The position numbers were made by a program, and so were the translations under genes. The notes under the pieces were generated by a model. That model saw only the letters and a list, made by a program, of their open reading frames with translations. It did no database searches and was not told the origin of the DNA. Of a stretch of DNA of 64,000 bases, positions 8,340 through 64,000 are shown piece by piece. Each line of letters begins with the position of its first letter. Positions within the stretch are counted from its first letter, which is position 1. Origin of the DNA: Thalia democratica. Lineage: Eukaryota. The stretch spans positions 34,224,001 to 34,288,000 of the forward strand of contig OZ241828.1 of the NCBI GenBank assembly GCA_965202585.1. Direction: 5' to 3'.

Positions 8340-8480
8340 TTTCAGAACTTTTCGCAATTCTGATTGGTTCACACGCTCATACACCTGCAGGTTTAAGTTG
8401 CCATGACAACGAACAATACTGTGAATTATGACATCACTTAACCATGATCAGCTACCATACACTTTACTGCATCCAACTTC
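8340..8480. promoter_or_regulatory. Candidate enhancer: inverted CCAAT + RFX X-box + CRE-like site
   Basis: ATTGG 8363-8367, GTTGCCATGACAAC 8397-8410, TGACATCA 8429-8436 in a GC-richer island; same motifs in copy 2 (X-box at 54574-54587). Confidence 0.45.
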
Positions 8481-12200: not shown

Positions 12201-12988
12201 AATTCGTTTGTATCACTAATCTACTTTAAGTCTATAAAAATGATATTAAGTTTTTAATTTGTTGTAAGCGTGTGAATTACTTTGAAGTTATTTATTATTT
12301 ATAAAGTGTTTTGACTTTGTTATAACGGTTAAGCTGTTGAAAAGGCATTGCACATATTAACCGGTATAAGTAAGGGTTGAAAAGAAAATGTTTTATATAT
12401 TAATAGCGTTAGTGTTATGTTTGCTACTGTTAACACTTTTTTTTTAAACAGCTTGTTAAGTTTACTTAGTACTTGTAACTTGTTTTTTATCCGTTACCAA
12501 ATTCTTTAATAGACGACAAATTAATATTTAGTATGCATTTTTCATCAAACCCTTTAATGTAGTTAAAAAATCAAATTGCTTTTATACAATGTTTTTACTA
12601 TCCTTATAAAAGTACCTATTGTATGAAAGTGCGCTCTACTTGTTATGAAAGTAATTATTCGTAAAGACTTTTTCAGTTGTTATTTAAAAAAATTATGAAA
12701 TAACTTTTTTTTACACTAAAATTTAAAGTAAGTATATTTGGATATTTTAGTTATAACTTAAATATTGTTAACAGAAGTATGATATATAATATTTTAAACA
12801 AACCAATACTTAAAATTACTTTTCTAATATATAAGTTATTGCAGCTGTATGTGTTATATTAATTGAACTTAAATCAAAAAGTATGAAAAACTGAAGAATA
12901 CTTCTCAAACAACAAAAAGAAAAAACTAACAAAAAAAAACTTGAATTTTTCATGGAATTTTTGTATTTAAGTGCCTCAAGAAGTCATT

Positions 12989-13061
12989 ATGAGTTTAACA
13001 CGCAAGAGTCAAAATTGCCTGCTTTTTATCCAACTACTTTTCATTTTAATGGCAATTTCAA
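12989..13061 (+). CDS. robo: Exon 1: signal peptide MSLTRKSQNCLLFIQLLFILMAIS
   Basis: ATG at 12989, basic n-region, hydrophobic core, strong A|GTAAGT phase-1 donor that joins exon 2 in frame; retained in the duplicate copy. Confidence 0.8.
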
Positions 13062-40400: not shown

Positions 40401-43400
40401 AGAATTAGGTTTTAAAGCACAGCCAACACAATCATTAAAAAAACTGTGCTTATTTATAACTAAAAACCTAACTTTAAAATGTAAGAGTTTTTTCGCTAAA
40501 GTTCTTAAAAAGCTCAGTATTGTCTTATAAGCTGTAAATATAAGGAGTCAATTAATTTATGCTAGGTCGTACTTAATAAGTTTACAATCAGTTAATTGTC
40601 TAAAACAAATTTAAACTAACTAAAGTTTAGGCCTATGTAGAAAACTTAAATAACCATTTGCAAATTGGTTCCATCTTGACTTTTGAATTTAACCAATTTA
40701 GTACAAGCATAATTAAAACATAGTTACTTTGTATATTTTTTCATGTTTTTTCATACAGTTTTTGCATTAAGTAACTTTTATGAACAATATGTTTAAAAAA
40801 TGATGCAGTCTTGTACGCAACTATTTACGCAACACATGTTTACTAATAACTACGAAACAGTATACAACAAAAAAAATAGTAAAATTCACCACATTAATTG
40901 AGTAGCTTTTATGCGAATATATCAACAAGTTTAATTACTTATATTAAAATCAAACTACTTAGTTCTTAAAAAAAACAACATTTATATATATATTTTGATT
41001 ACCTTCACACTTTTAATATGGTGATGCACTTAGTAAAAAAGAACTTAAATAGTAAATTTTTTGAGGATTAATAAAATCATATAACAAAATTTATCATCTC
41101 CGTTATATTCTAAAAATATATTTTAGGCTCCTAAACACTACCCGGAACTACATAATTTGTATATAACAAGCTAAAAACACATTGAATTAATCGTAATTTG
41201 CAATGAGATAAATTTATAATGTTTTTCATGATTATGTTTCTAATATATTTATCAACAATATTGAAAACATCTGAAAGTTAACGTAATTATTTTTTCTACA
41301 AAAAAAAAAAACAGTGTGTTTAAAAGTTTAAAATTTGAAAAGCGTTTTTTTTATTTGAAGGCTCATTAGCAAAATGGATTTTGAAAAGCTAATTGTTTTT
41401 ACCATATGGGGAAAAAAATTCTATCAGTTTCAGCATTAAAATATAACTTTTAATTTATAATCTTTTTTCAAAAAGTTAGATACATAAACACACTATAATA
41501 AATTTACTACGAGTTTTTGACTTATGCATAAAACATTTTCTACAGTTATTACAAGTTCTACTTTAACAATTGTCTTCTTTTTCCAACGCTTAACAACGAC
41601 AAAGATTTTAATATTTTCACAAAAAATAAAATAAGTTTGATTTTTTAATTGTTTTGTTCAAAACGATTATTAAATTTAAATTGTCAAAACAACTAAACTT
41701 TCCAAATATCTGATAATTGCTATTCTATAACTAATTTTAAAACAAAAGTCATTCCACCAAAAAACAGAAAAAAAAAACACAGTAATGTAAAACGTTGTTT
41801 AAGTAAAGTAGCTAAAATTTTTGAACAATAATAAGGTTAATATTATAAAAATTAGACTTAAATTTAGATTTATTGTATTAAAAATCAAAAAATATAACTT
41901 TTTAAATGATAAGATAAATAAATGAAATTATGTTCACATCTAAAAGAAATAATTGTTTCATAAAAAATTGCTTCAATTTTGTTTAACATCAAAATAAAAA
42001 AAACATTAGTCTTTACTTTATATAAGCAGCTAGTAAGATAATATATAGTTTTTGTTTATTTGCGTTCGACTTACATTATTAAATAACTCTAATTGTGCTT
42101 TTTAAGTTGATCTGTGTATTATTTGTTATTTCACATTAAATATTATTAAAATTTTATGTAACTGAAATTTTGTTCCTTAGAAAACTAAAAATTAATCATT
42201 TTATTAAACAGTTTTAATACTTTTAATACAATTTTTTTCAACGGTTAATAATTTATTAAAGTGAAATTTTGTAAACCAAGTTATTTTGTTGTTCTTTATA
42301 TGTAGTAAAACTTTTAATACTATATAAAAACTTTAACAACTAAACTTTAAACAACAGTGAGTGGTTTTTTGAAAATGTTTTAGTTTAATGAAATATTTTA
42401 CTTAAATATTGTTTTTGGATTGCTTTATAAAAAAGTGTTTTAGGCTTTTCACTTTAAACGAAATTTAGATTTCTAAATAGACTGTCTTTTGAATAATTCT
42501 TAATGTTTTGAAAATATACATTTTATGACAATGGTGTAATAACTTATTATCGAAAAACTACTTTAAAATTTTTAAACTTGTTACAAAACTTTAGTACAAA
42601 AAACTTTGTTATTACTAATCGTAAATTGAAATTGTAGAATTAAAAAACGAAATTTTCACTCCATTAGTCATTGATATTAACAATAGTTGGCTATGAATCA
42701 ACACGTACGATCACCCTTATATTATTAGCAGGTTTTTCTTTACTAATCTTAGTTAAGAAGAATTTACATTGAGCAAACAAAAAATGAAAAGTTAAGTAAC
42801 AGAAAAGTTTTCAAATACTAGTTTATTAAAAAACAACATTTTAAAACAGAATGACGTGTTTTATATACTATCACTTATCAAATTTTATATTATACAAAAT
42901 GTAATGCTTTATAAAAAGTTTATAGAATTATATTTAATAAAGATTTAAAAAGTAAAGTTTTTACCTTTTAACCTCTTAAAAATTGAAAGCTTTTCATAAT
43001 TTGAATATAAACTTAGTGTTCTTAGAGCTCTTAAGACTTTTAATACAAATACTAGTTATAACAATTAATACAACAACTAAGATAAATTGAAATTCAACTC
43101 CTAAACAAGTAAAGCTTCAAATATACCTGTATTTATAAATAAAACTTTCAAACTTTTGAATCAATAATCTTTTGTGATCGGAAAATTACTAGCAGCTGCA
43201 AAAACAAACTCAAATTAAGCTTTAAATAAACTTCTAATCACCACATTGCTATCTTGCCAAACAAAAAATGTTTTAAGACGTCGACACAAAAAAAAACATG
43301 AAGAGAGTTTACGAGTTTCAACATCACAAAATTTTTATCCAAATATTCCATTTAAGACCTAAAACAAATTAAGAAACTTTAATGTTTTTAAGTTTTAAAG

Positions 43401-46400
43401 AGTTTTATTTTTCACTCTTTAAAAACAAATTACGATAAAACAAACGTTTAATTTTTTTTTCTTATTTAAAACAAAGTTTTTAACCAAAATTATTTTAAAG
43501 TTTTATTATATTGTGCAAAACACCTAATACCTTCATTTTATTTGGTTTCATTAAGTATAATTTCATATAATTAAACTTTTAAAACTTTGCCTATATAAAA
43601 ACGTATGTGCAGTACTCACATTATATATATTTAAAACAAAAAACTGTTAGAATACAAAACATAAAAAAATATATAAAGAGAACTATCTTTTAACAACCAG
43701 ACGTTTGAAATAACTTTAAAGAGTATATAATAATAACTCGTGTTTGATAAAACCTTAGTCCGACTATTGATGTCATGCTTGATTGAAAAAATGACCTATT
43801 TTTTCAACTATAAAGTATAACACAAAATTTCAAAGTTAAAGTTACTTTTATACTGCTAGAATCATAAATATATACCGTTAAAATTCACAAAATAAAAAAT
43901 TTATAAAAAAGGACACTGTATTAGCTAGTACAAGTTGAGTGTTATACTTCAGTATTTACTATTAAACAAACACAAGTATGTAGTGATAAATTGTCGTTCA
44001 AATATACCCGGGTTTCAATCAGTCAACCCCGTAAAAACAAACATTAATTGAAAACTGTCAATCATAAGCATGAACCTAACAGGCAAATGTGAGAGTGCTT
44101 TTTTTAGTTTGACAAGTTTTACTCAAATATAAATGATTTTAACATAATAAGCAACTTAATAAATATACTCCGTTTAATATCACTTTTACAATGAAAAATA
44201 CAACTTACGTAAAATTAATTTCACTTTAACTAAGCTTTATTGTTCTTAGAAATTTTTGGAATTTTGTCAAAATAACTTATGTGGTAAAACATCTAAACCG
44301 TGTAGATTACTTAAAACAAGACTTATTAATTTTTATAATTTGCAATATATTTTGAGGTGCAAAAAATCAGCATTGACTTACTGAGTTTTAAATAGTTTTA
44401 ACAATATATACATATCTTTATATTTCATTATTCAATTTTATTTGAAACGTCATAATTTTGTGATTTTTTTTTTGTGTGATTATTTAAAAATTCTGCTATG
44501 TACTTTATTTCAATCTGAAGATACGTGTTAAACGTTGAAATTTAGTAAACGATGCGAAAATTAGTTATTTTTTGTATTATGAATATACTTATGTTTAAAT
44601 TATTTCTTCAAATAGAATGTAACTATATAACTACTCAGTACTTAATAGTACGAGAATGCTTTCGGTGTAGCTTTAAAACTTTATTTTGAATTTTTTTAGA
44701 AAGTTTTTATACTTTTTAGTTAAATTTTCCAGAAAAAAAGAGTTACTAATCTTTTACATATATCAATATATTTAAAAAAATTTAAAGATCTAAATTAATA
44801 AGAGCAGATTTATACAAAGAAAAAAAAAGATAAAAAGCGTATTTTTAAATTGTTTTGTTTAAAATTTTTCTTTTCTATTACTACTTATTCAAAACGAAAT
44901 GTGTTTAGACTTTGTTGTCAAGCATTAAATTAAAAGCGATACAGCAGTTATAACTTTTAAATCATTGCAGTAGGTTTAGTTTTCTTATATAGCTAATTAT
45001 TCTCTATTAAAAAACTCAGAAAATTTAACAATAAAAATATTTTGAAAATAATGTTATGTTTGTAATTTTGTTCATCATATATTGTAATGTCATAGATTAT
45101 TTTTGCTGTTATGCCAAGTTTGGCAAATTTACCTTATAAATAAAAGTATATGTAAAAGTTAACGTTATTTAAGATTATGATATTACAATACATATTTTCA
45201 AGAACTATTTTAAATTTTTATCAAAATAAGTTGTTTGTTTCTACTAAATTAGACTTAGTGCAAAGTTTACGCAGATTGTTTTTTAGTTTTGTAGTAAACA
45301 TTATAACGAAACCCATTAAATTTTCTTATAGCTCGTGCTCATAACAAAAGCTTAAAACTATTTGAGATATTTGTCAATAGCTAAATTTTCTTAAATATAA
45401 TTTTAATGCAATTGTTCAATATTTTAATATTCTTTTATGGTTTGTAAAGCATTATTTTATCAGTTGTTTTCTTTGAAAATTCAAAAAATTATGTTTTTAG
45501 TATTAATAATACAAGAAAAAACATAACATTTTTTCTTGTATAAAAAGCAAAATCTTAAAACAACACTCTACGGTTTTCCAAAAAAACAAAACATAACTTA
45601 AATACTACAACCAAAAACAATGTACAACAGCAAACAACTTGTTCAGAACAAAAAATATTCTTGTTTTCAAATTTACAAACATCTGTGTTGGCAACTTTCT
45701 AAAAAAAAGTTATTTACCATCCAATTTACATACTTACTTAAGGTAAGTAAACGTTATTAATTATTTTAAAGAATATAAGTTAAATATACACTAGCTAAGA
45801 ATTTCAAAACTTTGTTAAACTTTTTAACAGTTCTTAGTATAAAATACATATTTCCTTTTTAGTCTACTGTTTCTAATTATGTTGTTCCACTTAGCATAAC
45901 TTTAGAATTGTTTTCAAAATTAATTACAATATGATTGTTTATCTTTACTTAAATTTGTTTCTCAATTTACTTTAAAGTAAACCTCTTGTTTGAATAAACG
46001 TTTATCTATCACAATTGTTTATAAAATTCAATAGCTTGCTAAATCGAAATGTTGTTTTGCACAAATTTAAAAAAGAGAACTCAGCAAACTGCGGCTTGTG
46101 AAGTTAAATTTTATATAATACTTTAAAACTTGTTTTATACTTTGAAGTGAAAAAGCTGGTAAAACTTAAAAAACTTTAATTTTGAAGAAAATATATCTTT
46201 TTATATATACAAAAAGTTTTGTACACTGACAAAGTAGTTTCTGCCTTTTGTGACAACTTGTATACTGAGTATTAAAATAAAATATAAAACGTACAAAAAC
46301 AGAAAGTTAAACGTTTTACCTCTGTATCAAACCAATATCCCAGCGCTTATTTCGTATCTAATACTGAGTTTATACAGTTATAATTCAAAATATTACAAAA

Positions 46401-49400
46401 CTAAAACTGTATGTTCATTTTCTCAGAAAATTGAAAAAAAATGTTTGATATTGATAAACTAAAACCTCTTTATTTTATATAAACAAATTAATTGTTCATC
46501 CTATCTATATTTTTTAAAAATAATTAACTAAAAAAAATACTATTAGTTTTCAACAAAACTACAAATTACATGTTTTGAAGGAAATACTGTTTAAAGGGCT
46601 GCTTAAATTCTACTTTAAATAAAATAAACTGTTTTCAAAGATAGAAAAATTACCACTTATTGATATTTCAAACTTTTATTTTACAACAAAAAAAAAACAT
46701 ATATATTTTTTGCCTATGACAATTGTAATAAAAATCTATAACAAATTTACTTACTGTTGATTTAGCAATGAAAATATACAAAATAAAAAATGTTTAGAGA
46801 CTACTTCTACTTAGTTGCAGTACCATGAATTTTTAGAGAATTAAACTTTCAAAAAGGTCGGAGCTAAGACTGTTATACATTCAAATGTTTTTGCGAAATG
46901 TAAAACTGTCTTTTGAAAAATAAATAACCCTTGACATATTTGAATAAAAGCTACCACTTTGCTCATATATAAACTTTCTAAATCCTTTATTTTATGTAAA
47001 TAATGAAGCTTTATATAAGTGCACATTACGTTTATGATTTTATGTATACAGTTTAGAAGAACTTTTTTTTAACTTATATATAACAAATTCTATTTTAAAA
47101 CAAATCTATATTGCTAAAACTATTGAAAGAAAAAATATATGTTATGAAGCTTAAAAGTAATTACTAAAATAATTGTACAAGCAAAAATAATATTTATATT
47201 TAAAATACTAATTTTTATACTTAAAACTTATAGTTATACAAAAACAATCAATCCAAGCAAGGAGTACATATTAGAAAACATAAATAATAACATTTATCGG
47301 CAAAGTTTATTAATTAGTTTAAGAATTAAGGAAACAAACAAAACTTTCACGTAAGTATTTGTTTCAAAACTTTAAACCTGTACTCTACATAAATATATTG
47401 TTTACAGTTAAAAACATGTAGGCTAAATTTTATTTATAAATTTTAACATATATGATAACTATGTAGTTTTTTAAGTATTTAGTATATTAAGTGTTTTGTA
47501 GGTGTGATCAATGTTTTCTATAATGCTATAACGTTCAAAAAAGTATTAAAAGTAAATGATGAACTGAGCTATATTAAGAAAGTTTTAAAATCCATAAATG
47601 AAAGAATGATGGATAGTAAAAGAAGGTCTAAACTTTAACGGAACAAACATCAGTTTTCGTACAAACGCAACAATGTAAGGTTCAGAGTTAACAGGCAGTT
47701 TGCCTCTTGACGTCACTTGACAACACAAATGTCGGAAACAATGACTATAATCAGTTTTCTACTCGTTTATTTTTACTTCAACGCATAAATGAATAGTCGA
47801 CTTCAGATTCAATGTTTTACCTAAGGAACTTTAGCTGTCTAAAATACTGATTTCGGCCAAGAAACTTTTAAAGCTCAACAATTAACATACTTTACGTACT
47901 AAAAATGACATTTATAATAATAGATATTTATTTTTCAAACAACGTTTGTGTAGATTTTAAATAAACAACGTCTTTCATATACAACCTTTTTAGTTTTAGA
48001 AGATATATGTTCCAGTGTTGTAAGTTTTCATCAGTAGAAAAAATAGAAGCAAGAAGATTCTACAACTGTTACTCTTAGCTAATTTAACCCAAAGACATTG
48101 AATAAAATATTAAATTTTAGAAATAAAAAAGTATACTAGATAAAGATAAGGCTAATTACTAAATAATTAAATTTTTAGGAATATTTTTTTTACAGTTTAA
48201 TCTAATTTATTTATTTAATTACAAGGCTTTAACTCCTTTAAAAAACAACCATTAAAAAACTAAAATATACGATTATTATGTTGTTAAAGATAATTTTCAA
48301 TTATTCTTAAACGATTAGTGTCACTAAACACTGTTTAAGAAGATACAATTTTCAAATGTTTAAAATATTGATGTATTTCTTACTTAATGATATTATTCGT
48401 TATTTTAGTAAATTTTATGTACTTAAATAACATACATAACAAACAAATAAAAATTGCAAGTAAAACATTATAAATGCATAGCATTATATACAAAACTATA
48501 TGTGTAAAAATAACAAAACTTGAGATCAATTGCGATATGAAATAACTATTTTAAACAAATACAAGTAAAATATACATAAAGTCAAACTCACAATCAATAA
48601 AATGGTAAACAGCCGTAAGGTTTCTTTTTTATTTACTAAAATTAAAAGAAAACATAGACTCCATTAAAATATGATCAATTTGTATGCAGCGTCTATATAA
48701 TAACTAATTCAAGTGTCAACTATTTGTTTATTCAGAGCAAAAGAACAAAAAAGGTGGTGAAAATGAAAGTTTATTAAGTTAGTTTTGTTGCTTAAAAATG
48801 TACTATTAAACATGTATTTTACTGGTTTGATGGTTTTGAACTAGCTAGATCAAAGTTTTAGTAAAGTATATTGTTCGAATCTTTTGTTGTTCATAGCTTT
48901 CGCATTAATCGATAGATATTTAAACTATCAAACATGTTATTACATATACTAACTTAGATTTTATAAACTAAAAATCTTCTTCAAATTGTTATATGTATTT
49001 CTAGATGTATCTTTTTAGTAGTTTTATATTTTTAAATGCTCATAAAAGTAGTAACAAAATCTTTATTAAAAATGCATGTTTATTAAATACTTTAGAAATA
49101 TGAAATACCAAATGTGCTAATCTTAGAGATGAAACAGCGTATTTTTAAATTTAATATATTATTTTCATTAGTTTTTTACATAAAACCCAGTATCAAAAAT
49201 TAGACTTTTAAGATAAGCTTACAATTTTAAATGCCAGTTTTGCATCAAAGCTACACAAAAATTAAAACAACTCTTTAACTTAGCACCAAATTTAATACAA
49301 ATAGTATTCTTCAATTCCTCTTTTCTTATACAAACTTCAAATTTTTATAACTTCTAAAATAATTTTTATATGTGTTAACTTTGCCTAATGCTTGTTTTTT

Positions 49401-52400
49401 AACGAGTTTTATGTTTTTTTTTCTACTGAATCAATAAGTATCTAAACTAAAAGTTTTAAAATTAAATGAAATGTAGAACTTAATTTCAAACTTAAATTAT
49501 CTAGAAATTTCTTAAATATTTTCATATAAACTCTAGTTTCGATTTTAACAAAGAAAAACACTTTTCTTTAAACATTTTTTTTTCGAATTTGTTAGCGGTT
49601 AAACTGAAACTTTTAAAATTTTTTGAAATATTTAATAATTTAAGTTATATTAATTTAAAAATTTCAAGCTTCTACGTTATAATAACTTTTCTGCTATGTT
49701 ATAAGGAGTTTTTTGTCGACAACTTTTTGAAATATTTGATTAATAACTAATTTCTCTAGATTAATTTTAGTGTAATCAGTTAGTAGGTTAACCGGTTTGA
49801 AGTACTAATCAGTATGTTTTGCAATATATGGCTTACTAAATTACTATTAAGGCTGGATATAATTAATTTATTCTTACACTACTTTTGTAAGTTGTTATTT
49901 AAAAAAAGCATTAGTTAACTATGAAGTTTTAAATATTATTGAAGGATTTGTTAAATGTCAAGTTTTTTAGTCTCTAATTTTAACAGTATAAGTCGAATAA
50001 TAAGTTATTTTAAAGATAATGTCTTAACAATACAATAAAATTGCCACAAGAAATCAGTATCTGCACATTGTTTTTAGCTAGAATAATAAATATATTATCT
50101 AAAAGCTTAAACCATATAAATGAAATAAACTTATAAGTCTAATATTCACAGTACTTTTAACTTAATTCATCTTTAAACGTAGTAACAATACTAGCATTAT
50201 ATATAAAAGTTTATTTGAGTAAAATTACTTTTTTTAACCTGTAACAAACTTTGTAAAACTGAAACATAAAAGCTTTTAATGGTATATTTTTTAATAATAA
50301 AGTTTTAAAACAGTTTCAATATAATAACAACAAGTTTTAAAAACTGTTTTTAAAAGAGTTGTCTAAACTAGTAAAAAAGTTGTAATCGCCCCTTTTACCG
50401 TGACATAATATTGTTTTTTTTTGAAATTCATGACAATCAAAATTTATTAAAAAATTCTTAATAGTTAAAGGGACAAGAAAATATTTAATGTAGCTAAAAT
50501 TGATAATTTAATCTCGCATCTGATAATTTACTGTGGTCAAAAGAAAAATTCTAATGATAAGCGGTATCATTAATTTTGCATTGATTTGTAACTTAAGCTT
50601 CACCAACAAATTTATACATAACATCAAAGGTAATGCTTTAAAAGAAAATCAAAATACTATTTTCATGTTTCAAAAGCGCAAGTCTAGTTATAACTTATAC
50701 TATTATCAATAAGTGATTATACTATCAGGTTTAGTTATATCGGTATAATGTTATTCTACGTTTTATTTAAAAAATAGTCAATTTTTTGAAGGAATAAGTA
50801 TGCTTTTTTCAAATTTTAACCAACTCACTAAAACAAATGTCGTTTTACTTCGAGTATTTTTGATTTCAAAATTAAAATAAAACTAAAAAATACTGTGGAT
50901 GATATACTATAATATTTAAATGCTAACAAAATAAAAGACGAATACAAAACAAGATAAAATTTTAGTGCAAAATATTTCTAAGTATCGTTTTGACAGTCAT
51001 CCAACTGTAAATCAATGTTTATATGTTTTCAATATCTGTATATCAAATTTAATGTTATATTCTCATTATAAAAAATATCAACAGTTTTCTAAATACATGT
51101 TGAATGAATTTTAAACGTACTGAAAATAAATTAAACTTAGAAAACTTAATTTTATAAAACTTAAAACAAATAAAATAAAATGAGTTAAACTTTTCAGAAA
51201 TTCAAAATTTTTTGTGTTGCTTTTTTTATTAAAAAAAGATCAAAACTTCAAAGCAAAAACAGGATGTACCGTATTAGTTCAAAAGTATTCGAGTTACCAA
51301 ACAACCTGTTTATTTACAAACAAGGAGCTATGTAGCGTAATTTAATTAAATAATTATTTGAAAGGAAATGCTATTGATCCTTTTGTAAATTGTTGCTAAG
51401 TTATGAAAAAGTATAAAGCTTTGATTGTGAACTCTCAAAGGTAATTTATATTAACAAAATTGAGCTTTTTTGCATCGTGAATAAAAATGTAACACAGTAG
51501 TCTTATTTCTTTATTCTCTTAAATGTTTTGATTCATAATTCATTTTTTTAACTAAGTCACTTCTTTAGTATGTGGTTAAAAACTATAAAAGTTTAATATT
51601 TGTACATTAAAAGATTATCTAATTCTATGTGTAAAACTTTCTTTTTTTTTATAATTTTATATAAATGTATACTTTTTAAAAAATTGCAGATGATTGACTG
51701 TAAAATTTTAGTCGTATAACTTATAGTAGACAAAACAAAATTTTAAAGGTGATAATTAATGTGCCGTATAAAATATATGTAGTAAAAATTATTTTACATC
51801 CATATTATATAAAACATAGTAGCTGAAATACCTAAGCAAAAATCATAAATATCGTATACTTGTATTATCCCAATTACTTACTGAATTTAAGTATGTTTGT
51901 GTAGAACTTATTTAAGTTTTATATGTTTTTTTGATAACTGGATGTTATAACTGTAAAATTAAATCAAATATTTTTTAACCATAGATGTCGTGTTTATTGA
52001 TTTATACTTAACATTTAAAGGAATTTTAAAAAGAACAAACACATTTAAGAAACTATAAAACATAAAAAAATAATAAACTTCTCCTTCATAAAAGTCATTT
52101 TTCTTGTTTATAACCTTAATTTAAGTAAAAACCATCAAATAATTTACTTTAAAAAATTTAAAGGACTAATTAAAATATTATTGTTACTATTTTTTAAAAA
52201 CCTAAAGTTAGTCTTACCAGTTAAAGAAAGGTTCTTTATAAAGCTTACTAGAAAAAATGTCATTATAAATACATAACATATAATCTTTAAATAATGCCGA
52301 ACACATATCTTAAATATTTTAAGGATAAAAAGTTATATTTATATTTTATGTTTAGTTTTAAATCAAAGTTGTAAAGTAAGCTCTTAAAAGGTTTGAAGTT

Positions 52401-55400
52401 GTTCAGTTCCATTAAAATTTTTGTCTTAAATCTTAGAAAAATCACAGGTATAATTTTTCAAAAACATCAAAGAGTTCACGCATTAGTAAGGAATAAAAAT
52501 GGTTTTAAGTAAAATTTATGGATAACTGGATGTCACGAAAAAGTGCTTATGAAAATGCGAGTAAACGTGATTTGTAACGAGTATTAGTATAATGTGAAGA
52601 AAATATTGTCTTCATAATCTCATAAGCTGTTTTGTTATGGTTTGAAACGAAAACAAACTTTGTTATTTTCCACCAATTTGTTCATTGTTGTCTGTGTTTT
52701 GGTTTGGGTTTCGCAGTTGTGTAAAAATTATAAAAATAATTTTAGTCTTGATTAATATTTTCAAAAACTTTGTAAACAGGATTAAAAATATATTTTAGTT
52801 ATTATTATGATTAAGTGTTAAAAGATATAACAATATAAATTGCATTTTAGAAATTTCTAGTAATACTTCCTCCTTTTAGATTTGATAGTAAAACACTAGT
52901 AGTTGTATCAGTTAGTTTAACAGATTTGCAAACTGTTTTTCAGCTAGCAAATAAAAAAAAAAGTGTTATCTTAGTTAACATTTTGTATAAATTGATTATT
53001 TGTTATATAGTTAGGCTACAGTTATGACAACAAACATCTTCTATTACTCAAATTAAGATATTTTGATCCAAAAAATTATTAGTTCTCTGTGTTTACAATA
53101 TATTTATCTACATAGTAGTTTTATAGTGAAAAGCACTAATTGAAAAAATAGTGAGGAAATTGATAGTAAAAAACTCTCAATTATGTTATAAACAAAATTT
53201 CATTAATATCTACGTAATAATTTAAAATTAACTTATATAACTAAGCGAATTATAAAATATTTTTTTAACTATAAAAGTTATTTTTTTCATAAAACCTTAG
53301 TAGTTTTATATTTACGTTTAAATAACTCTTACATAAATTTAAAACACTTTCTTTTTATACACATACAAACCAAAATTGAAAACTACCTCAATTATTTCTA
53401 ACATTCTTTAATTTTTTCGATGATAATAAAACATTATATTTTAGAAAACTTAAAAACAAAGAAATATTTATAAAAAAGGTGATCAAAAAGTAATTTAAAA
53501 TTTTAGATATTTTAAAAACTAATTAAAATACTTTACTATAACTCCTTAAAAATAAACTTTTGTTGTTGGCTTAATTTTTTAATTATAGCCTATTAAGATC
53601 GTTTTTGTGTTTTTCGTTACTAAGATGTAATTAAATCATTAATTTGTCTTAAGTTTAAAGTATAAATAAGTTTTAATAGAGTAAGTAAGTTTAGAAAAAT
53701 AGTTTTAATTCCATTACAATTTTAAATAAAATAAAAAAAAATGAGTAAAGCAGAATATGATATTATAATGAGACTAAACAAAAACTTAAGTCAAGTTTTT
53801 TTTTTTAAAGACATTATAATTATTTGTTCAAATTATAACACGAGCTGGTAAAAGCAAATCAGTCAGTTTACAGTAGCAAATAATATGTAAAGTTTTTAAA
53901 GATTAAGTTAATTTGACGTATAATTGATCTTATAAAATTAGATTAAACAGTTTTGACCATTTCAAATAAATATTCGCATATAAACACATGAAATAAAAAA
54001 TAAACATTGAATATAAAAACCTTATATACTAAAAATAGCATAAATAATATAAAATACATCAATAAAAACACGATAAAACTGTATGTTTTATTACGTTTTT
54101 TTTTATGTTTAATAAATATTCTAAAAGTTACGAATCTTAAAAACAATATTTATGTGTAAAAATCTCAGCTTAACCATTTTCTTTTCACATAAATCTAAAT
54201 TTTTCTATATAAAACAAAAATAAGTGCAAAACTGATCGTAATAAAGATTAATTTTTTCGAGTAATGTCTAAGTTACTGGAGTATTTTCAATAAAAAAAGT
54301 GTTTAGTATATAGTTTAATACATTAAACAAACGTTAAAAAGACTATTTTTTAAAACTTAAGCAGGCTATAAATACATAAAACTTTTCACAGAAGTAAATT
54401 TTAGCATAAAATAAGCGTAAAATTCTCGTTTTCCAGTTTTGACAAGGTTATAAATACACAAAAAATCAAAGTTTGTTTATGTTATTTCAACACAGAAACG
54501 ACCTCCCGCAAATAGCTTTCAGAACTTTCCGCAATTCTGATTGGTTCACACGCTCATACACCTGCAGGTTTAAGTTGCCATGACAACGAACAATACTGTG
54601 AATTATGACATCACTTAACCATGATCAGCTACCATACACTTTACTGCTTCCAACTTCATGCAACGTTTGATTTGTAAAGAAAATTTGAAATTCAATATGA
54701 GTAGCTGTAATAAAAATTATGAAACCATACCATGCAAATAATTAAAGACGTTCAAATTTATAGCAACAATTTTCTATGGTTACTAAACGTTTAACTTTAT
54801 AAACTTAGTACATTTCTTTAAAGTTTTACATTTTTATTATCAGTTATGTAGTTGTCTAGTTTATAAAGTTAGTAAATGACATACATAAATTAAAGTATGT
54901 TAAGTCATGTTTTTCTAAGCTATGTTTTTATTAATTCTTAAAAACTATTGATTAATTTTTATTTTTAACAAAAAATAAATTCTAAACGTACAATTTCTTG
55001 TCAAAAAATATTTGAACTTTAATATTACTAATTTTGATTGACAAATTCTTTAAACAAACCATAACTTCTGCAATCTAAGACCAAATAAAAGAAATTGATA
55101 CTATTGCAAGAAATAAAATAATATTTTATAAAAATAACTTTGGTACAACGTCGAAATGAAAAAACTTCTTATTAAGTTACTTTTGCAATTTAAGACTCAA
55201 CTATTTTAATAAAATTCAAAGATCCTGATATTGTAAAAAAAAAAAATAAAATTTTGAAGTAAAATAGTTGGTTTTTGTATCAATCTAGTTAAATGTATTT
55301 TTTAAGAGTTACTTGAAACTCTTATTATTCACAATGGAATGTTGTATCCTGCTGTAGGTTCCAAATTTCAATTTACAAACAAACGAGCTTTTAAGTGTGA

Positions 55401-56479
55401 AGAATCTAGTTTTATAATAATTCGAGTGATTTATTTGAAAAGTACTTTTAATTTTTTTAGTATTCTAGTATTACTATAAAAAAGCTTTTAGTAGCAATAA
55501 TAATTTTCAATTAATTGAAAATATATGGTAGAAAATGACTTCTATAAAGTTCTAAAAGTATTAAATTGTTCTCATAAGATATTTTATTGTATTCTAATAC
55601 ATTTATTGCATATACATACATGTTATCTCTGTTTTAAGTATAAAAAAAAATTGCTATAACTATATCATAAAAAATGATTGTTTACTTATGACATAAGTAG
55701 TCTTTTTAAAGTTATTTTTACTTACAGATTTTTTTCCTTTACTTTATAGTAAAGTAACTTTTAAATAATCATAACCTCGTTTATCAATTCAATATGTGTA
55801 CCTATGATTTACAATTTATAGTAAGTTAATTTGTAAAAGCTATAACTTTTATATTAAAATATTTTCTTAAAAATAATATGTTTAAAAATATTTTTTAACT
55901 TTGACAAAAACTCATAGAACTTCAAAATAAACAAAAAAATGTACTAACTCAAATTAAAAACTTTAATACAAAAAAACGCATAAATACAAAGGTAATATAA
56001 ATAGAATACCTCTTAAATGATATAATTTTCAAAATAGATATTTCAAAGACAATATCAACTTCAAATATAAAATGTAATATGTTTTGAATAGAATACCTTA
56101 ATTTTTTTAAAAAGCACCACATTACTTTGTTTTTATCAAACACTAGACCAGGGTTTCCCAAACTCATTTACTAAATCGCCCCCTTTTCAGTAACTTGAAA
56201 AAAAAATCGCCCCCCACGATTTTACAAAGTAGTTTTTCTTTTGAGTACAAACTTTTGAGCTAAAAAAAGTTGTGTTCGAAATGTAATTTAGTCTTGTACT
56301 TCTTATGCACGCACTTTTGTGTTCAAAGTAGTTTACAGGGCTTAAGAAAATAATTTACAGTTTTTTCTTAGAAGCCCAGTAAAGTGTATTAAAATACTTA
56401 ATTATTAAAAAGCCTTGAGTAATCTGTAATCAATCCTGTTTAAATATGATCTGTTCTGAAACTATTGAAACTTTTAGGT

Positions 56480-56814
56480 CAGTGGTGGACAACTTTTGTA
56501 GTCAGCAATTCATATTTACTAAAAAATATTTTTTATTTTCAACTCGTTAGAAAATGTAATTGCGGGCTGCATGATTTAGAAAAATTACAAATAAGAAAAT
56601 TAAAAAACTCGAGCAAAATTGTAATAAAATGATTTAGTATTATTGTGATCTAGGAAATACTTTTGTGAACTGAAAACGAAATAAAAGCGTATATCAAAAT
56701 ATTAGATATCAAAAACTAAATTTTATTTATTTTGCACAAGTAGTTTTCAATTTACTTAGCGGGTCGAAATTCGACTGGATCTGCGACTGGATCTGAGCCG
56801 TCACTACCCACCTG
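56480..56814. mobile_element. Possible old hAT-type MITE nested inside the Buster element
   Basis: Starts CAGTGGTGGACAAC, has GCGGGCTGCAT internally, and ends with CGACTGGATCTG x2 and GAGCCGTCACTACCCACCTG, resembling decayed hAT MITE ends; no TSD found. Confidence 0.35.
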
Positions 56815-58478
56815 AAATCTTAACTTAAACCTGACATTTTAATAATATCTCATATAACAAATTTTGGACAGTTAGAAGTTAATACTAAGTAACTTATTTA
56901 AGCCGCACAAAATACTTAAATTACTTTATAAATAGGCTTTTTTAAAGTATCTATACCAGAGATTAAAAAACTATAAAAGAATTAACAGTTTATTTTACAC
57001 ATAATAAAATATATATTAAAATATTATTTCTGATCTAGTTAAAGGAAGTTTGACCGACTGGTTGATTATCTCACATGAAAAGTGGTTTCATCAACAGCTT
57101 CAGTAAATGCAGTAAATTTACTAATTTCAATGCTAAGATATATTGTAAGCAAGTTAGTTGTAAAGTTAAAAATTTAATTTCTAATTTTTTAAACTACTTG
57201 TTTTGTAGTAGAATACCATGAAATAGCATTTGACTTGGAATAATCTTTAGGGAACTAAACCTTAATTCTAACAATTTTTTTTCTTTATTTAAATTCGAAA
57301 TAAAAATCCAATGTTTTACAGTTAATTCTGTGAACAGAAAGTAATCATTAAAAAAAACTTTTAACTAGGTTTAAGTTTTGTTTTGTAACTGTAGCAATCT
57401 TTTTGATGGCTTATTTAATTCTGTTTAAAAAGTTTTTTTTTTCTAGCTATTAGCCTACAATAATTTAACAGAGGAAAATAGTGAAAAACTAAAAGCTAGT
57501 GTTGAAGTATTAAAATAAACTAAGTATATTCTAATTGCTAATATATATTGAATTCAGATAAAACAAAAAGTTTTATTAATACAAAAAGCTTGTATTAATA
57601 GTTTAAAACTCCTTTTATTATAATAAACTTTTGAACAATAATAAATCAAGTTAGAAAATAAAATTGTGTTTAAGAAACTTTTAAATGAAAAAGTAGAAGT
57701 CATTTCAAATAGAAACCTCAAATTTATACTCTTTTAAAACCAAAAAAAAACATTTTAGAAATAAAAACTTTAATGGTTGTCAAAATATTACAATCAGATA
57801 ATAGTTTTATAGTGATATAAGTTGTACACAGATTAAACTAGAAATAACAAAAACCTGTCAAATAAAGTTCTTTCAAACAAATATTTTAATCACTATGCTA
57901 TAAAAACTTTTAGTGTAATGTAAAACAACGAACATCAACTACAAAATTAACCAGGTCAAAATAAAATTATTAAAATCTTTAAAACATAAACCATTTAATA
58001 AACCGCTTGAGTTTGCACTTTGAAAAAAATCTAAGAAATTTATTACCATATTTTATTTTACAAAATGACAAATTTCAATATGCTATACGCAATGATGTTA
58101 TGAATAAACATGAAATCCACTAAAACATAAAACAAACTTTCATTAAAAAAAAAGATCTATATAAGCTATTAAATATTATATATATTTTGTTTTATTAATA
58201 TTTAGTTAGTAATAGACTTTACTTTAGTTAAATTTAAGAAAATATAAATTTGCACTTTTTTTTGGGTAAAAAGTGCGAACTCAAGAGGAAGTCTACCGTA
58301 AATAATATTTATTAGGCATTATGCAAACCTGTTGTAGAATAAATAGCTTAATAAAGTTGTTATTATAAAAAGACTACTTAAATACAATACAAACCAGGTT
58401 AAATAAGAAATACTTCAAAAGATCAAATAAAATTAAAAAACTTTCATAAAATAATGTCTGCTACTGAAGTCTAATATA

Positions 58479-58864
58479 ATGTGAAGGATGAGGAGTATGA
58501 CTGCTTGCAAGTTTTTCTAATCTGATTCTTAATAAGTAAAATAGAGCCTTAAGTCACCTCCTTTATAAATATCTAGAATAGACCTTTTGCTCAAGATGTT
58601 GATAACTGAACTGAAAGCTTTCTCAACAACATAGCTAGAAGGAAAAGCTTTAAACAACAATCTAAATTCCTCTAAAATGATTGGATACTTTTGCCTTAGT
58701 TTTTGTTGAGTCCAAAAGCTTTCATATCGTTTTTTGGAAGAATTTACTTTAAGTTCAAGGTCAGTTTGTAAGTCTGAGAAGGTTTCCTGTAAGTCGTATA
58801 CTTCAAAAGTATTTGCCTCGAAGGGATCCATACTTTTATCTATATGATAGCTTTTATGTGTCAA
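58479..58864 (-). pseudogene. C-terminal fragment of a Buster-like hAT transposase (dimerisation-domain region), frameshifted
   Basis: ORF 58529..58864 has 'FW.Q...YP...AFPSSYVVEKAFSSV...RSILDI..GDLRL'. An adjacent frame continues 'LEKLASSHTPHPSH', matching the HPSH C-terminus I recall for Buster transposases. The N-terminal part is missing. Confidence 0.88.
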
Positions 58865-61800
58865 ATCTAAATTTTACTACTTAATATGTTAAAATTGTTA
58901 AAAATTCCAGATTTTTTCCAGGTTATTTTTGCTTAAATTGTCAAATTCTAGGTTTTATCAGGTTTCTAGGTAAATTGGCAACCCTGTATAGTTTTATTTC
59001 TTAGTATAACTTAGTGACTTTTCAAAAAGCAACTGGAAATATCATGAGGTGATAGTTAGTAATAAATAACATAGATTTTTACAAACAATTTATAACCCCA
59101 AATAATATATATGTCAGGTTACAAAATAGTGAGAGGGATTCCAATCGTCTATGATATATGTAATTGTTAAATATGGAAATATATAAATGAAAATATAATA
59201 TTTATTATAAAGTAGGAGTCATAAGCACAAGATTTTTTTCTTTTTTTTTTTCATAAATAAAATAAACTTTTTTGTTTAAGTTTTACCTCAGGGCCAAATA
59301 ATTAATAGCAAGCTAAAAATAGTAAAATAGCAAGAAAAAAAGTAAAAATCTTATGACAACCCAAAATTTTAAAATCGCCCCCTTTTCGCCCCCTTACTAG
59401 TTATCGCCCACCCTTTCGCCCCCTTACTAATTATCGCCCCCCAAAATACTAAAATCGCCCCCAGGGGGGCGATTTCGCCCACTTTGGGAAACCCTGCACT
59501 AGACTTACAAGCCAATATTCGTTAGTAAACTTAAAATAAATGGAATGCAGCAAAAAAAAAAAGGGAAAATATTTTTTTCTAATTTCCACATCAGTCTTAG
59601 TGAAAAAATCAATTTAAAAACATGCATGTCAAATAAATGTGTTAAACAAGCTAGTCAAAAGCAAAAAAAAGTATACAATAGTTTTATTAAAAAAGTTAGA
59701 TTTGCTAGTTGTAATCATGTAAACATTTAATTCTTAAAACTAACAAAAATATATTATTTAAGTTTTTCAAACTGTACTTTATGTATGTAAATTGTTGTTT
59801 GTGATTGTTTATCATTATTTTTGTTGTTGTATATAAAACGTTTGTTGAATTTTTCGATGTTTAAAAGTTTTATGTATAGCTTCTTAAAAGTATAAAAATA
59901 GTGTCTAAATTTTAGCTATCAACTATTTCCTCTAACGTTTATTTCCATACTATAATAAGTTTATTTCTTAAAATATCATAAATATGAAATAATTATTTTA
60001 AATTACATTTAAAATGTTACAAAATTTGGCTGATTATTTAGCTGAGTTTAACTTTAGAACAACTTTTTTTAGTATAATTTTTTTTTAAATACTAATATTC
60101 ACGGTAAAAATGGAACAATAAAGTTAACCGTTTTCAATTTATATGTGATTTTATTTATTTAAACTCGAATACCGAATGATGATACTTTTTTAACTCAAAT
60201 TTAAGCCACTCAAAGCGATGTTGAGCTAAAGCAAAGCCCCAATCACGTTTTGAGAGAATGATGATGAAAAAAGTGATTGATTTTTTATAAAACATTCTCG
60301 TATTTGGCAATTCAGTGCACCATGCATGCGCAATACCGGTTAGAGTGTTATTTTTTTTTATTTCACATCATTAAAAATAAGAAATTTTTTGTTAACTTGT
60401 TTCCTGTTGTTTAGTTTAAGATAATAGCTTAGTTTAATTGTTCAATACTTTTAACAAGCTTTTAGACGAATGAGTCAGTTTTCAGTTGGTTTTTTCAATT
60501 TTAGCCTATGTTGTGAGTCGTAATTAATTAAATTATTATCAGTAATTGTATCAGAAAACAAAAAAAAAGTTAAATTTGCTTAATCGAACCTTACGTTGAC
60601 ACTATGTAATTACTTTTAAATGTATATTAATAGAAAACTGAACTTTTTATGTTTACCAGTAGGTTTGTGATACTTTTGTTTCCGATTGCAGTCACAGCAA
60701 AGTTGTGAAATGAGTTCAAACATGCAACTCTTAAATGTCACTCATTATTGAACTTGCGCAAATATAAAACTTCAAGTTTACCTCTCACTATTGCAACCTT
60801 CTTTCTTATCGCTTTTTTCAGTTTAAAAATTTCTAAGCTTCATTCTTATTGCCACTAATCAGCGTAGCGTCTCAGTTCTACATAAAGTAAATAAAAATTT
60901 CAGATAATTTCAAAGATGAAAGGTTGTTGAAGATGAACACTTGAACTTGCTCTTATTTGTTTGCTTTTTATTTGTTTGCATCTTCTTAAGTTTCAGTCTT
61001 CAAATTTTCGCTAATTGCTTAGTGGAACGGCAATAAATTGAGTTTATAACCAATAGAAACAGATCGGGGTTGTTAAAAGCAATCAATATTTTTCCCTCTC
61101 TAGCAATGCTGGCCAATTTTAATGATTTTTTGGGTGGTTAGTTGGCTACTGTCAGCTGTTGCTAAGCTCTCCTTATTACTAAGCCTAAGTTTTGAGCCAT
61201 AATCGGCTTAAAGTTAACAGTAAGTGTGCAGGATGTTTTAAAGACTGCCTTTGAAAATCAGTTTAGCTTTTCTTTCCTGTTTGCTATGTTTTATATTTAT
61301 AAACGAAAGTATTTTACAAGTTTTTATGTTTGCAAATAATGTTCAGTTCAAATGTATATTTTTGTGAAGAAAAACATAAGAATAACAAAACATTTATACT
61401 TGATTGCAAACAAATCAAAGAAATTTCAAACAATGTTTAGAAAAACATTTTTTTTTGTTAGTTTAGTTACGCTTACAACACTTCTTTGGCGCTGAATGTT
61501 CTGATTGTATTATTTCTTCAACTTCTTATAATCAGCAATCAACGGCTGTCGAAACTGTATAAACACGCCTATAAATTTGTTTGGTGTGCTAATTTGCTGA
61601 ACTGTAAAATAAATTTTGTTTTTTTTCAAAAAAAAAGTTGACATACAAACAGCATTAGCTTTTTACAACGCAGTGATAAATCTGAATACTTCCTTAATGT
61701 ATGTTCACAATGCACGGAATTCGTTTGTATCACTAATCTACTTTAAGTCTACAAAAATGATATTAAGTTTATAATTTGTTGTAAGCGTGTGAATTACTAT

Positions 61801-62497
61801 GAAGTTATTTAGTATTTATAAAATGTTTTAACTTTTTTATAACGCTTAAGCTGTTAAAAAGGCATTGTACATATTAACCGGTATAAGTAAGGGTTGAAAA
61901 GAAAATGTTTTATATATTATAGCGTTAGTGTTCTGTTTGATACTGATAATCCTTTTTTTTAAACAGCTTGTTAAGTTTACTTAGTATTTTTAACTTGTTT
62001 TTTTATCAGTATCCAAGTTCTTTAATGAGACGACAAATTAAAATTTACTACGCGTTTTTCATCAATGTAGTTAAAAAAATCAAACTGCCTTTATACAATG
62101 TTATAACTATCCTTATAAAAGTACCTATTATATTAAAGTGCGCTCTACTTGTTATGAAAATAATTATTCGTAAAGAATTTTTCAGTTGTTATTTAAAAAA
62201 ATAAAAATAATAACTTTTTTATACACTAAAATTTAGAACAAGTATAGTCGAATAGCAAAGTTATAGCTTAAATATTGTTAACAGAAGTATAATATATTAT
62301 ATCTTAAACAAATCCAATACTTAAAATTATTTTTCTAGTATATAAGTTATTGCAGCTGTATGTGTAATATTAATTGAACTAAAATCAAAAAGTATGAAAA
62401 ACTGAAGATTACTACTCAAACAATAAAAAGAGAAAACTAACAGAAGAACTTGAATTTTTCATGAAAATTTTCTATTTAAGTGCCTCAAGAAGTCATT

Positions 62498-62570
62498 ATG
62501 AGTTTAATACGCAAGAGTCAAAGTTGCCTGCTTTTTATCCAACTACTTTTCAGCTTAATGAAAATTTCAA
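62498..62570 (+). CDS. robo: Exon 1 of the second robo copy: MSLIRKSQSCLLFIQLLFSLMKIS
   Basis: Homologous to 12989-13061; ATG and A|GTAAGT donor intact; 4 amino-acid changes. Downstream exons would lie outside the window, so function is unknown. Confidence 0.6.
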
Positions 62571-64000
62571 GTAAGTTTCGTGCTTTTTTGTTATTCTTTT
62601 AAATAATTTATTTTCTGCTTAGTTTTGTATGTTTCTAACTGTTTTTATAATTTCAAAATATTATAAGTTAGTTTATTTTATGGTTTAAAAGTATTGTTTA
62701 CTAATAAATAAACAGTCAACAGGTCATAAATAAAACTAGTATATATAAAAACTTAATCTATATTATCTCCTAGTTTGTGTAAATTTTACTGAAACTAACT
62801 CTTTATTACAAATAGTAAGACAAAATATCAAAAGTTTAGTCATAATAAAGAGTTTTAGTAGTAGTATTTTTTCTCCAACAAAATCAACTTTTAATCAATA
62901 ACAAAGTTTTGATAAATTATCACTTTTTATTGGGTTTTAAATCAAAAACTATTAACATATTTTTAAACACAATTTTTGGAACATTAAGTAAAAGAAAAAC
63001 AGATCTAAAAAAATTATACTAAAAATATTAAATTAGTTTTTTATATATGATTTAGAATTTTTTACTTTGGATTTTTCGTTTAAAGATAGTATTAATTATC
63101 AAGTACATTTTTGAAAACAATTGCTTAAAGTACAAAATTTTTACTCATTTAGGGAACAAATCTTACTAGTAATTTACTTAATCCTACACAATATCACATA
63201 TCACAATACATAAAAGTAATCATTGTTAATTTTCACTTTGGATTTCTAATCAAAAAAAAAAAACTAAGTTTAAATTATATAATTCATTATACAAAATAAT
63301 ACAAGAAATTTGCACGAATTGAGAAAGCTATTTGTAGCTATTAGCAACCCGTGAAAAACAGAGCATGTCTGATTTAGAAGCTTCAAACAATTCTGTTCAG
63401 TGATGCAAAAACGAATGCATCAGAAGTGAATGCAGCCAATTAGTATGACAAAATCTTTCCGACTCAATTAAGATCCATGATTTCTCTTGGGAGCTTAACA
63501 AGCTTTCTCATTATTTTTGAACTCAAAGTTGATTTTGCTAGTTATTTTTATAATTCATAACAAAAGGAAAATAAAATGCAACCTCTGAACATTCAAAAAC
63601 TATCTAGTTTAAATTGAAAACCATATTTTTTAAAGTCTGTTAACGTTTAATTTTTATACTAGTGTCTGATTACAATGTATACAGATACTTCTATTTTTTA
63701 AATTTAAAATAACTTGGATTAGCCGACACAAAAATAAAAAAGTTTTGCTTGAAGTAGAACTTGTGAAATGATAAAAAAAATATTCATTTTAATTAAAAAA
63801 CAGATTAAAATCAATTATAACTTTTTAATTTTGAAAAAACGCTTCTATTGAGATTGATGAATAATTTATTGAGCGAAAAAAATTGATTATTGAAAGCTAC
63901 CGGCTGCTACATTCAGAACTTTATTGTCATTATTGGCGCCCTTATCAAACTTTTTTTACATTATTTTGATTTAATTATAATTTAATTCACCGTGGCAATT

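Follow-up and report, generated by a model that had tools for sequence, protein, structure and literature searches.

A probable tandem duplication by unequal crossover in a cluster of Robo-like receptor genes of Thalia democratica

Unequal crossover between tandem paralogs is known to leave hybrid genes, as in haemoglobin Lepore and anti-Lepore, in the arrays of red and green opsins, and in the hybrids of glycophorin A and B, and tandem duplication by this route within a gene family is ordinary and textbook in kind. Here we describe what is probably a further case, in a stretch of 64,000 nucleotides from Thalia democratica (assembly GCA_965202585.1, contig OZ241828.1, positions 34,224,001 to 34,288,000 of the forward strand, which we call the window and write C4:34224001-34288000), part of an 802-Mb genome of roughly 23% G+C. 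The window lies in a cluster of Robo-like receptor genes, where two direct copies of a unit adjoin and where the gene at their border, gene A, combines parts of two paralogs. As in the haemoglobin, opsin and glycophorin hybrids, the neighbours are in direct orientation, the crossover would have been in register, one unit is in excess, and one gene is a 5'/3' hybrid. Unlike in those systems, the exchange would have taken place in a poorly conserved intron with about 11-19 shared bases, and not in a long identical tract, and it would have exchanged the entire cytoplasmic tail of a receptor as one module.

Robo paralogs stand side by side in several animals, ROBO1 with ROBO2 and ROBO3 with ROBO4 in vertebrates, and robo2 with robo3 in Drosophila. 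The cluster described here shares with these pairs the recurrence, as linked paralogs, of single-pass receptors with five Ig and three FN3 domains. It differs from them in belonging to a family of at least eight members in this genome, more than is usual for Robo, and in that the CC motifs were not found in the tails searched. The layout of five Ig and three FN3 domains is also that of CDON, and so is not specific to Robo. PMC6389290 treats ROBO4 as an ohnolog of ROBO1.

Adjacent copies of a locus may also be the work of the assembly. False heterotype duplications are recognised by haploid depth, by copies set apart by a gap or by sequence that lacks support, by discordant reads, and by one-copy k-mers (bioRxiv 10.1101/2021.04.09.438957), and most of them are separated by an assembly or depth gap and lie at haploid depth (Ko et al., bioRxiv 10.1101/2021.04.09.438957). 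The present locus resembles these cases (Ko et al., bioRxiv 10.1101/2021.04.09.438957 / PMC9516828) in its adjacent copies that differ by a few percent, in the heterozygosity of the animal, and in leftover haplotig-like contigs; it is unlike them in that no gap separates the copies and in a join that has the anatomy of homologous exchange. In the zebra finch, a true haplotype-specific tandem duplication within one contig, missing from the other allele, was shown by long reads (bioRxiv 10.1101/2021.04.09.438957, Extended Data Fig. 4b). The duplication in T. democratica likewise sits in a single contig, and an unplaced contig, C551, agrees with a different structure on the second haplotype; unlike the long-read proof in the zebra finch, the case made here for such a difference between haplotypes is drawn only from this third contig and from a third allele in short contigs.

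Two adjoining units and the junction between them

The extent of the repeat was mapped by self-alignment of 264 kb, consisting of the window with 80 kb of left and 120 kb of right flank, and negative positions as well as positions above 64000 are window coordinates extended into these flanks (Table 1). A first-pass annotation, made from the letters of the window, had reported that at least 14.5 kb recur in direct orientation about 46.2 kb downstream. This direct repeat is confirmed: self-BLAST and MAFFT re-alignment place window 1-9968 on 46159-56148 with 98.15% identity over 9,957 aligned bases, and 9961-14492 on 59497-64000 with 93.4% identity over 4,461 bases, both in direct orientation, and the two stretches have 8,300 20-mers in common, against 0 in shuffles. 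The offset from copy to copy is 46,158 bases up to 56148 and 49,536 thereafter, because a transposon of 3,348 bases is present in copy B. Two predictions of the same annotation were also borne out. The sequence at 37.5-46.1 kb was expected to correspond to sequence left of base 1, and 34192-46158 indeed matches C4:34209829-34224000; a second 'exon 2' was expected near 66.6 kb, and an Ig1 exon open reading frame (ORF) is found at 66627-66836, with its counterpart in copy A at 17101-17295. Alignment of the flanks beyond the window edges, which the annotation had proposed as a check, revealed whole tandem units of 48.4 and 49.6 kb, here units A and B, with 96.1% identity over 45,484 aligned bases. 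The repeated unit is made of the 3' tail exons of one gene, an intergenic region, and the 5' body of the next gene. The proposed tandem duplication of 'the robo locus' is therefore supported as to a tandem duplication and wrong as to one whole locus, as the unit spans two genes within a cluster of at least five paralogs.

Units A and B adjoin directly and in direct orientation with nothing in between, A ending at 34210 and B starting at 34192. The earlier view that neither breakpoint lies in the window was mistaken, the junction having been missed because its partner sequence is left of base 1. An assembly gap between the copies, one of the marks of false duplication, is absent: there are no Ns from -80000 to 81175, a stretch that holds the junction, and the gap of 100 Ns lies only at 81176-81275 (C4:34305176-34305275), within copy B, where it is 2.5 kb short of the end of the copy and between the FN3-3 and transmembrane (TM) exons.

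Sliding identity in a four-way alignment shows how copy A changes its affinity at the join between Z, the paralogous gene upstream, and B, the gene downstream. From 32.5 to about 34.2 kb, copy A is 96-99% B-like and 60-87% Z-like, and from about 34.21 kb on it is 97-99% Z-like and 10-87% B-like. At base level, copy A reads CTTGTTTTA immediately followed by ATAAATCAAAAAAGTT, with only TCAAAAAAGTT common to Z and B at this place; immediately left of the join, A and Z have an aligned identity of 0-15%, and immediately to its right A and B have one of 10%. The switch falls within one and the same intron, at a point that is homologous in the two paralogs, after the first tail exon (32840 on) and before the exon at 34858-35205. 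Exons are open on both sides of the junction, and the reading frame is kept, since the exchange is in register and falls in an intron. As assembled, gene A is a chimera: its ectodomain is B-type and its cytoplasmic tail is Z-type, and the exons of this tail (34858..37415) are 95-100% identical to gene Z and only 78-93% (protein level) to gene B.

In the whole genome, the 201 bases that surround the junction are matched only by A (100%), by Z starting at 34192 (96%), and by B as far as 34210 (82%), and the 43-mer that crosses it is unique. A dispersed repeat at this place, hinted at by loose ends at 34140, 34239 and 34255, was rejected on account of the same 201 bases, which match nothing other than A, Z and B. 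The junction pattern was not found elsewhere in the assembly as an independent haplotig, and a search of JGI metagenome contigs for the exact 43-mer gave no match, which is uninformative.

We favour, with a probability of roughly three in four, the view that the tandem segmental duplication, of about 48-49 kb, is real and arose by in-register unequal crossover. The parents would have been two adjacent paralogs of the receptor cluster, with Z on the upstream side and an X-type gene on the downstream side, and Z on one chromatid or homologue would have recombined with the X-type gene on the other within homologous introns. The product would be Z, followed by an X body with the tail of Z (gene A), followed by an X body with an X tail (gene B), and the repeated unit would comprise the Z tail, the intergenic region and the X body. 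The junction would then be present in the DNA of the animal. Copy-specific events were also counted for a real duplication, namely the transposon of copy B with its target-site duplication and a 1.8-kb segment of copy A (-4225..-2445) that is absent from B and present in C551.

The main alternative is an artefact, in which A and B are the two haplotypes of one unit written in tandem by the assembly, and the animal truly has only Z and one X-type gene. The first-pass annotation had raised this as a caveat, and we consider it unlikely given the anatomy of the junction, which is gap-free, in register between paralogous introns, and flanked on both sides by low identity with only 11-19 shared bases between. 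Since the parental sequences have little identity over hundreds of bases to either side, no overlap was available to mislead the assembler, and a random chimeric read or scaffolding join that happened to fall in register in two paralogous introns is very unlikely.

Public read data were consulted for window 31501-37500 in the form of Logan contigs of at most 500 bases with popped bubbles, in which depth is not interpretable. The stretch is held by two runs of the same sample, by a run of another study that is labelled as a different organism, and by metagenomes and metatranscriptomes from the sea. An A-specific contig reaches 34162 without mismatch. Many variant letters in the contigs are B letters left of the junction and Z letters right of it, as expected under either reading, and at site 32601 the sample has a third letter, neither that of A nor that of B, at lower depth. 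The run of the other study contains half of the stretch's words, in contigs that are 97-99.5% identical and carry private variants along with many of B or Z type; it is from a very close relative, or from the same species under another name.

Divergence between the copies and a third gene body

Taken per kb, substitution divergence between A and B stays at 0.4-2% across most of the unit. An island at A -11000..-7300 has 6-14%, divergence is again high in a second island (Table 1), and it reaches 20% in the 200 bases that directly precede the junction; in the exons, synonymous and non-synonymous changes are both present. Identity to D, an inverted paralog further downstream, is 82.8-89.3% for A and 82.1-86.7% for B. 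Conversion of the islands from Z or D is unsupported, as Z is there about as far from A as from B, and D likewise. Under a crossover between chromosomes that carried different alleles, or with gene conversion afterwards, the mosaic would be explained, and much of the difference between A and B may go back to inherited alleles or to gene conversion. If it is mostly inherited, the duplication could be very recent, which agrees with the patchwork seen in C551. The first-pass annotation had spoken of a young pair caught while diverging, a reading that is doubtful given a mosaic of 0.4-14% per kb and the patchwork third contig.

C551 is an unplaced contig of at least 41.9 kb which covers, in opposite orientation, the A-equivalent of -6654 to 32275. 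Its bases 1-27018 were placed through match tables with integer identities, and base-level comparison is limited to 12.4 kb. Over these 12.4 kb, at the sites where A and B differ, C551 follows B at first, A between about -6000 and -300, and B again from there on, with about 11 differences of its own, and it is without the transposon of copy B. Further in, its identity to B is 93% in the exon 1 region, then 87-90% and 86-92%, where A and B are about 97% identical. Its outer end carries satellite-like repeats that are also found upstream of gene Z, and it ends at most 600 bases from the point equivalent to the N gap. As a filler of this gap C551 was rejected, its first 556 bases being 97% identical to the post-gap contig and 92% to the pre-gap contig.

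Three distinct X-type gene bodies, those of A, B and C551, are thus present in one assembly, and the sample's contigs add the third allele at 32601. In a diploid, one haplotype at the least must then carry two or more such bodies, unless C551 comes from another locus. The arrangement suggests structural heterozygosity, with A and B on one haplotype and a different, more divergent arrangement on the other, which C551 would represent.

Several observations weigh against a real duplication and favour the artefact. The baseline divergence of 0.4-2% is within the range of allelic heterozygosity in marine invertebrates, and divergence is allelic in scale across most of the unit. C551 is nearly identical to A in some places and to B in others, with few private sites, as though the A-B differences segregated like alleles, and its being left unplaced shows that haplotig removal was incomplete. 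The N gap in copy B, with an end of C551 nearby, marks a neighbourhood that is hard to assemble. Finally, no listed Logan contig, all being at most 500 bases long, bridges 34192-34210. Two haplotypes written in tandem would nonetheless leave the three X-type bodies to be explained in a diploid, in addition to the junction.

The same pattern of divergence bears on a second alternative, an older duplication, at least about 10% diverged, that has been homogenised in patches by gene conversion or unequal exchange (concerted evolution), in which case the regions of 0.4-2% would not reflect its age. This would fit the sharpness of the mosaic, with islands of 6-14% and 4-12% beside bins of 0.4-1%, the clean B-A-B switches in C551, which resemble conversion tracts, and the many paralogs of the cluster that could serve as exchange partners. 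We regard it as possible but less likely, since more than 20 kb of non-coding intergenic DNA of low divergence with shared insertions is long for conversion tracts, since the islands have no evident donor, neither copy being visibly closer to Z or D, and since inherited allelic diversity accounts for the same pattern.

Lastly, the locus might be, in place of a quiet pair of axon-guidance genes, a hypervariable, recombining receptor locus in which exchange is frequent and deep haplotypes are maintained over long times, under selection that is diversifying or balancing, likened to the self/non-self recognition loci of invertebrates, and the A/B duplication would then be a segregating variant. 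Pointing in this direction are C551, which is no more than about 0.1% from A or B in the intergenic region and 7-14% away in the adjacent gene body, the jumps of A-B divergence between 0.4 and 14%, and the shuffling of tails and ectodomains between paralogs. We think such a locus quite improbable as an account of these data, and retain unequal crossover between Z and an X-type gene as the preferred reading.

The receptor genes and their family

The same series of open-frame exons occurs four times in the 264 kb, in genes Z, A and B and in the inverted gene D, and its ORFs, whose length is conspicuous in DNA so rich in AT, follow one order: five Ig domains, each on two exons, then three FN3 domains, a TM helix, and a number of tail exons. 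Pfam recognises I-set or Ig_3 half-domains for Ig1, Ig2, Ig3 and Ig5, and weakly for Ig4. The FN3-3 exon falls among fn3 clusters in the atlas with a score of 0.94, and the other FN3 domains were read by eye.

With five Ig, three FN3, one TM segment (GYIVMACGGFVLILAVVVFFYV) and a long tail, the exon ORFs have the architecture of Robo. Comparison of single exons with solved structures was less specific. The first Ig1 exon has equal scores to DSCAM, to ROBO2 (at the Ig1 position) and to neurofascin, and the second matches only titin and contactin; the Ig2 exon matches the Ig2 domain of Robo, with titin, DSCAM and contactin all ranking higher, and the Ig3 exon matches Robo2 at the Ig5 position. 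Single-exon matches to titin, contactin, DSCAM and Robo thus score alike, and the order expected of Robo is only partial. An all-database protein search with one generic Ig exon returned only giant titin-like multi-Ig proteins, none of them colinear with the gene, and an atlas search with the tail exon gave no usable match. Neither CC1 (PYATT-like) nor CC2 (LPPPP) was found by a regular-expression search of the tails of Z, A, B and D in three frames, which diverged motifs could escape. We therefore speak of genes that are Robo-like in architecture, putative single-pass receptors whose Robo orthology is unproven; the 'robo' label of the first-pass annotation fits the layout of five Ig, three FN3 and TM, and is unconfirmed as to membership, the exon searches being non-specific and the CC1 and CC2 motifs not found.

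Contigs from a marine metatranscriptome lie on the tail exons at 32840-32892, 33685-33744, 34944-35090 and 37335-37419, and one contig joins 33015 to 33668. They carry 1-3 differences each, and their source may be any paralog or wild relatives. They show that the receptor family is transcribed in the sea, which is not attributable to gene A itself.

The receptors form a lineage-expanded family with at least five such genes at the locus, and not a single locus. Gene Z is 75-83% identical to A at the DNA level, the inverted gene D lies downstream at 143-175 kb with 82-89% identity, and a match to the tail exon marks a fifth gene, E, at C4:34487309-34487938. The tail exon, of 203 residues, has five copies in the C4 cluster, with identities of 100% (A), 98% (Z), 95% (D), 95% (E) and 94% (B). 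The cluster was duplicated and inverted before, and this record of repeated duplication, with overall identities of about 78% for Z and about 85% for the inverted D, was likewise counted for a real A/B duplication. Between gene B and the inverted D, C4:34339751-34347350 (115.7-123.3 kb) contains partial copies of exon 1 to Ig1 with 67-93% identity, probably a truncated paralog. More distant relatives of the tail exon, with 52-64% protein identity, are present at C2:54415704-54416171, C2:58905803-58906249, C2:59032924-59033388 and C1462:9734-10183 (56%, C1462 being unplaced), two of these four having an internal stop, and decayed tail-exon fragments lie on C4 near 62.88, 65.98 and 66.03 Mb. Upstream of the receptor cluster, an ORF of C2H2 zinc-finger repeats with the HTGEKPF linker is found at -73278..-72973.

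Table 1. Coordinates of the duplicated units, their junction, and features of gene A and of copy B
Feature	Position	Strand	Basis or remark
Unit A	-14171..34210, 48,382 bases (1..34210 inside window)	+	begins in tail intron of upstream paralog Z; self-alignment of 264 kb
Unit B	34192..83756, 49,565 bases including 100-N gap (34192..64000 inside window)	+	self-alignment of 264 kb
A/B junction	34192..34210	+	19-base overlap of both homologies, contains TCAAAAAAGTT common to Z and B; no Ns
Copy of window 1-14492, the stretch named in the first-pass annotation	46159..64000	+	98.15% and 93.4% identity
A-B high-divergence island	11000..21000, B partner about 60500-70600	+	4-12% substitutions per kb; candidate exon 1, intron 1, Ig1 exons
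Candidate signal-peptide exon	11408..11503	+	hydrophobic ICLFIFVCIFLSFSLQMFA, conserved in Z, A, B, D; putative
Gene A, B-type body	17101..33066	+	ORFs, translations, Pfam, atlas; exons conserved and open in all four paralogs
Gene A Ig1 exon ORFs	17101-17295, 17569-17712	+	Pfam half-domains
Gene A Ig2 exon ORFs	24005-24190, 24292-24492	+	Pfam half-domains
Gene A Ig3 exon ORFs	25413-25652, 26013-26186	+	Pfam half-domains
Gene A Ig4 exon ORFs	26720-26968, 26877-27101	+	Pfam weak
Gene A Ig5 exon ORF	27534-27860	+	Pfam half-domain
Gene A FN3-1 exon ORFs	28619-28828, 29622-29843	+	read by eye
Gene A FN3-2 exon ORFs	30535-30810, 30918-31130	+	read by eye
Gene A FN3-3 exon ORF	31209-31571	+	atlas fn3 clusters
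Gene A TM exon ORF	31693-31944	+	TM segment GYIVMACGGFVLILAVVVFFYV
Gene A first tail exon	32840 to about 33021	+	canonical acceptor at 32840, RNA contig support
Gene A Z-type cytoplasmic tail exons	34858-35205, 35374-35982, 37206-37415	+	ORFs, comparison with Z and B
hAT-like transposon, copy B only	56149..59496, 3,348 bases		8-base target-site duplications CACTAGAC at 56141-56148 and 59497-59504; terminal inverted repeats CAGGGTTTCCCAAA

Mobile elements, local repeats and consequences of the duplication

As expected of a hAT element, the transposon of copy B is flanked on either side by the same 8 bases (CACTAGAC), a target-site duplication, and has short inverted repeats (CAGGGTTTCCCAAA) at its termini. 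More than 30 copies of it, with 90-98% identity, are spread over many chromosomes, and it is absent from copy A as it is from C551. Pfam gave no match to a hAT transposase or dimerisation domain for its ORF of 114 residues at 58532-58873 on the reverse strand. The element in copy B is probably non-autonomous or decayed, and the family, of about 3.35 kb, is probably young and recently active.

Other repeats are frequent in the region. A dispersed repeat of about 500 bases occupies an intron of the receptor gene at 29026-29527 (about 78586-79082 in copy B) and has dozens of copies, with 80-86% identity, on all large chromosomes. A repeat of about 160 bases at 44428-44598 has many copies across chromosomes at 81-89%, and a very abundant element of about 215 bases at -18815..-18601, with copies 92-97% identical in dozens of places, looks like a short interspersed nuclear element (SINE) or a miniature inverted-repeat transposable element (MITE). 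Further upstream, long microsatellite arrays of AAT/ATT type at -55826..-44600 are read as ORFs of poly-N, poly-I, poly-L or poly-Y, and local duplicates of 1.8 kb with 98% identity pair -55131..-53277 with -48298..-46445, and -49989..-48172 with -46452..-44637.

For annotation, the gene count of the family depends on A and B being two loci, and the mosaic C551 is a warning of structural heterozygosity. If the duplication is real, it would represent a natural module swap, in which a new gene combines the ligand-binding ectodomain of one paralog with the signalling tail of another while being nearly identical to both parents, and the locus would be well suited to asking how hybrid receptors are expressed and whether they persist.

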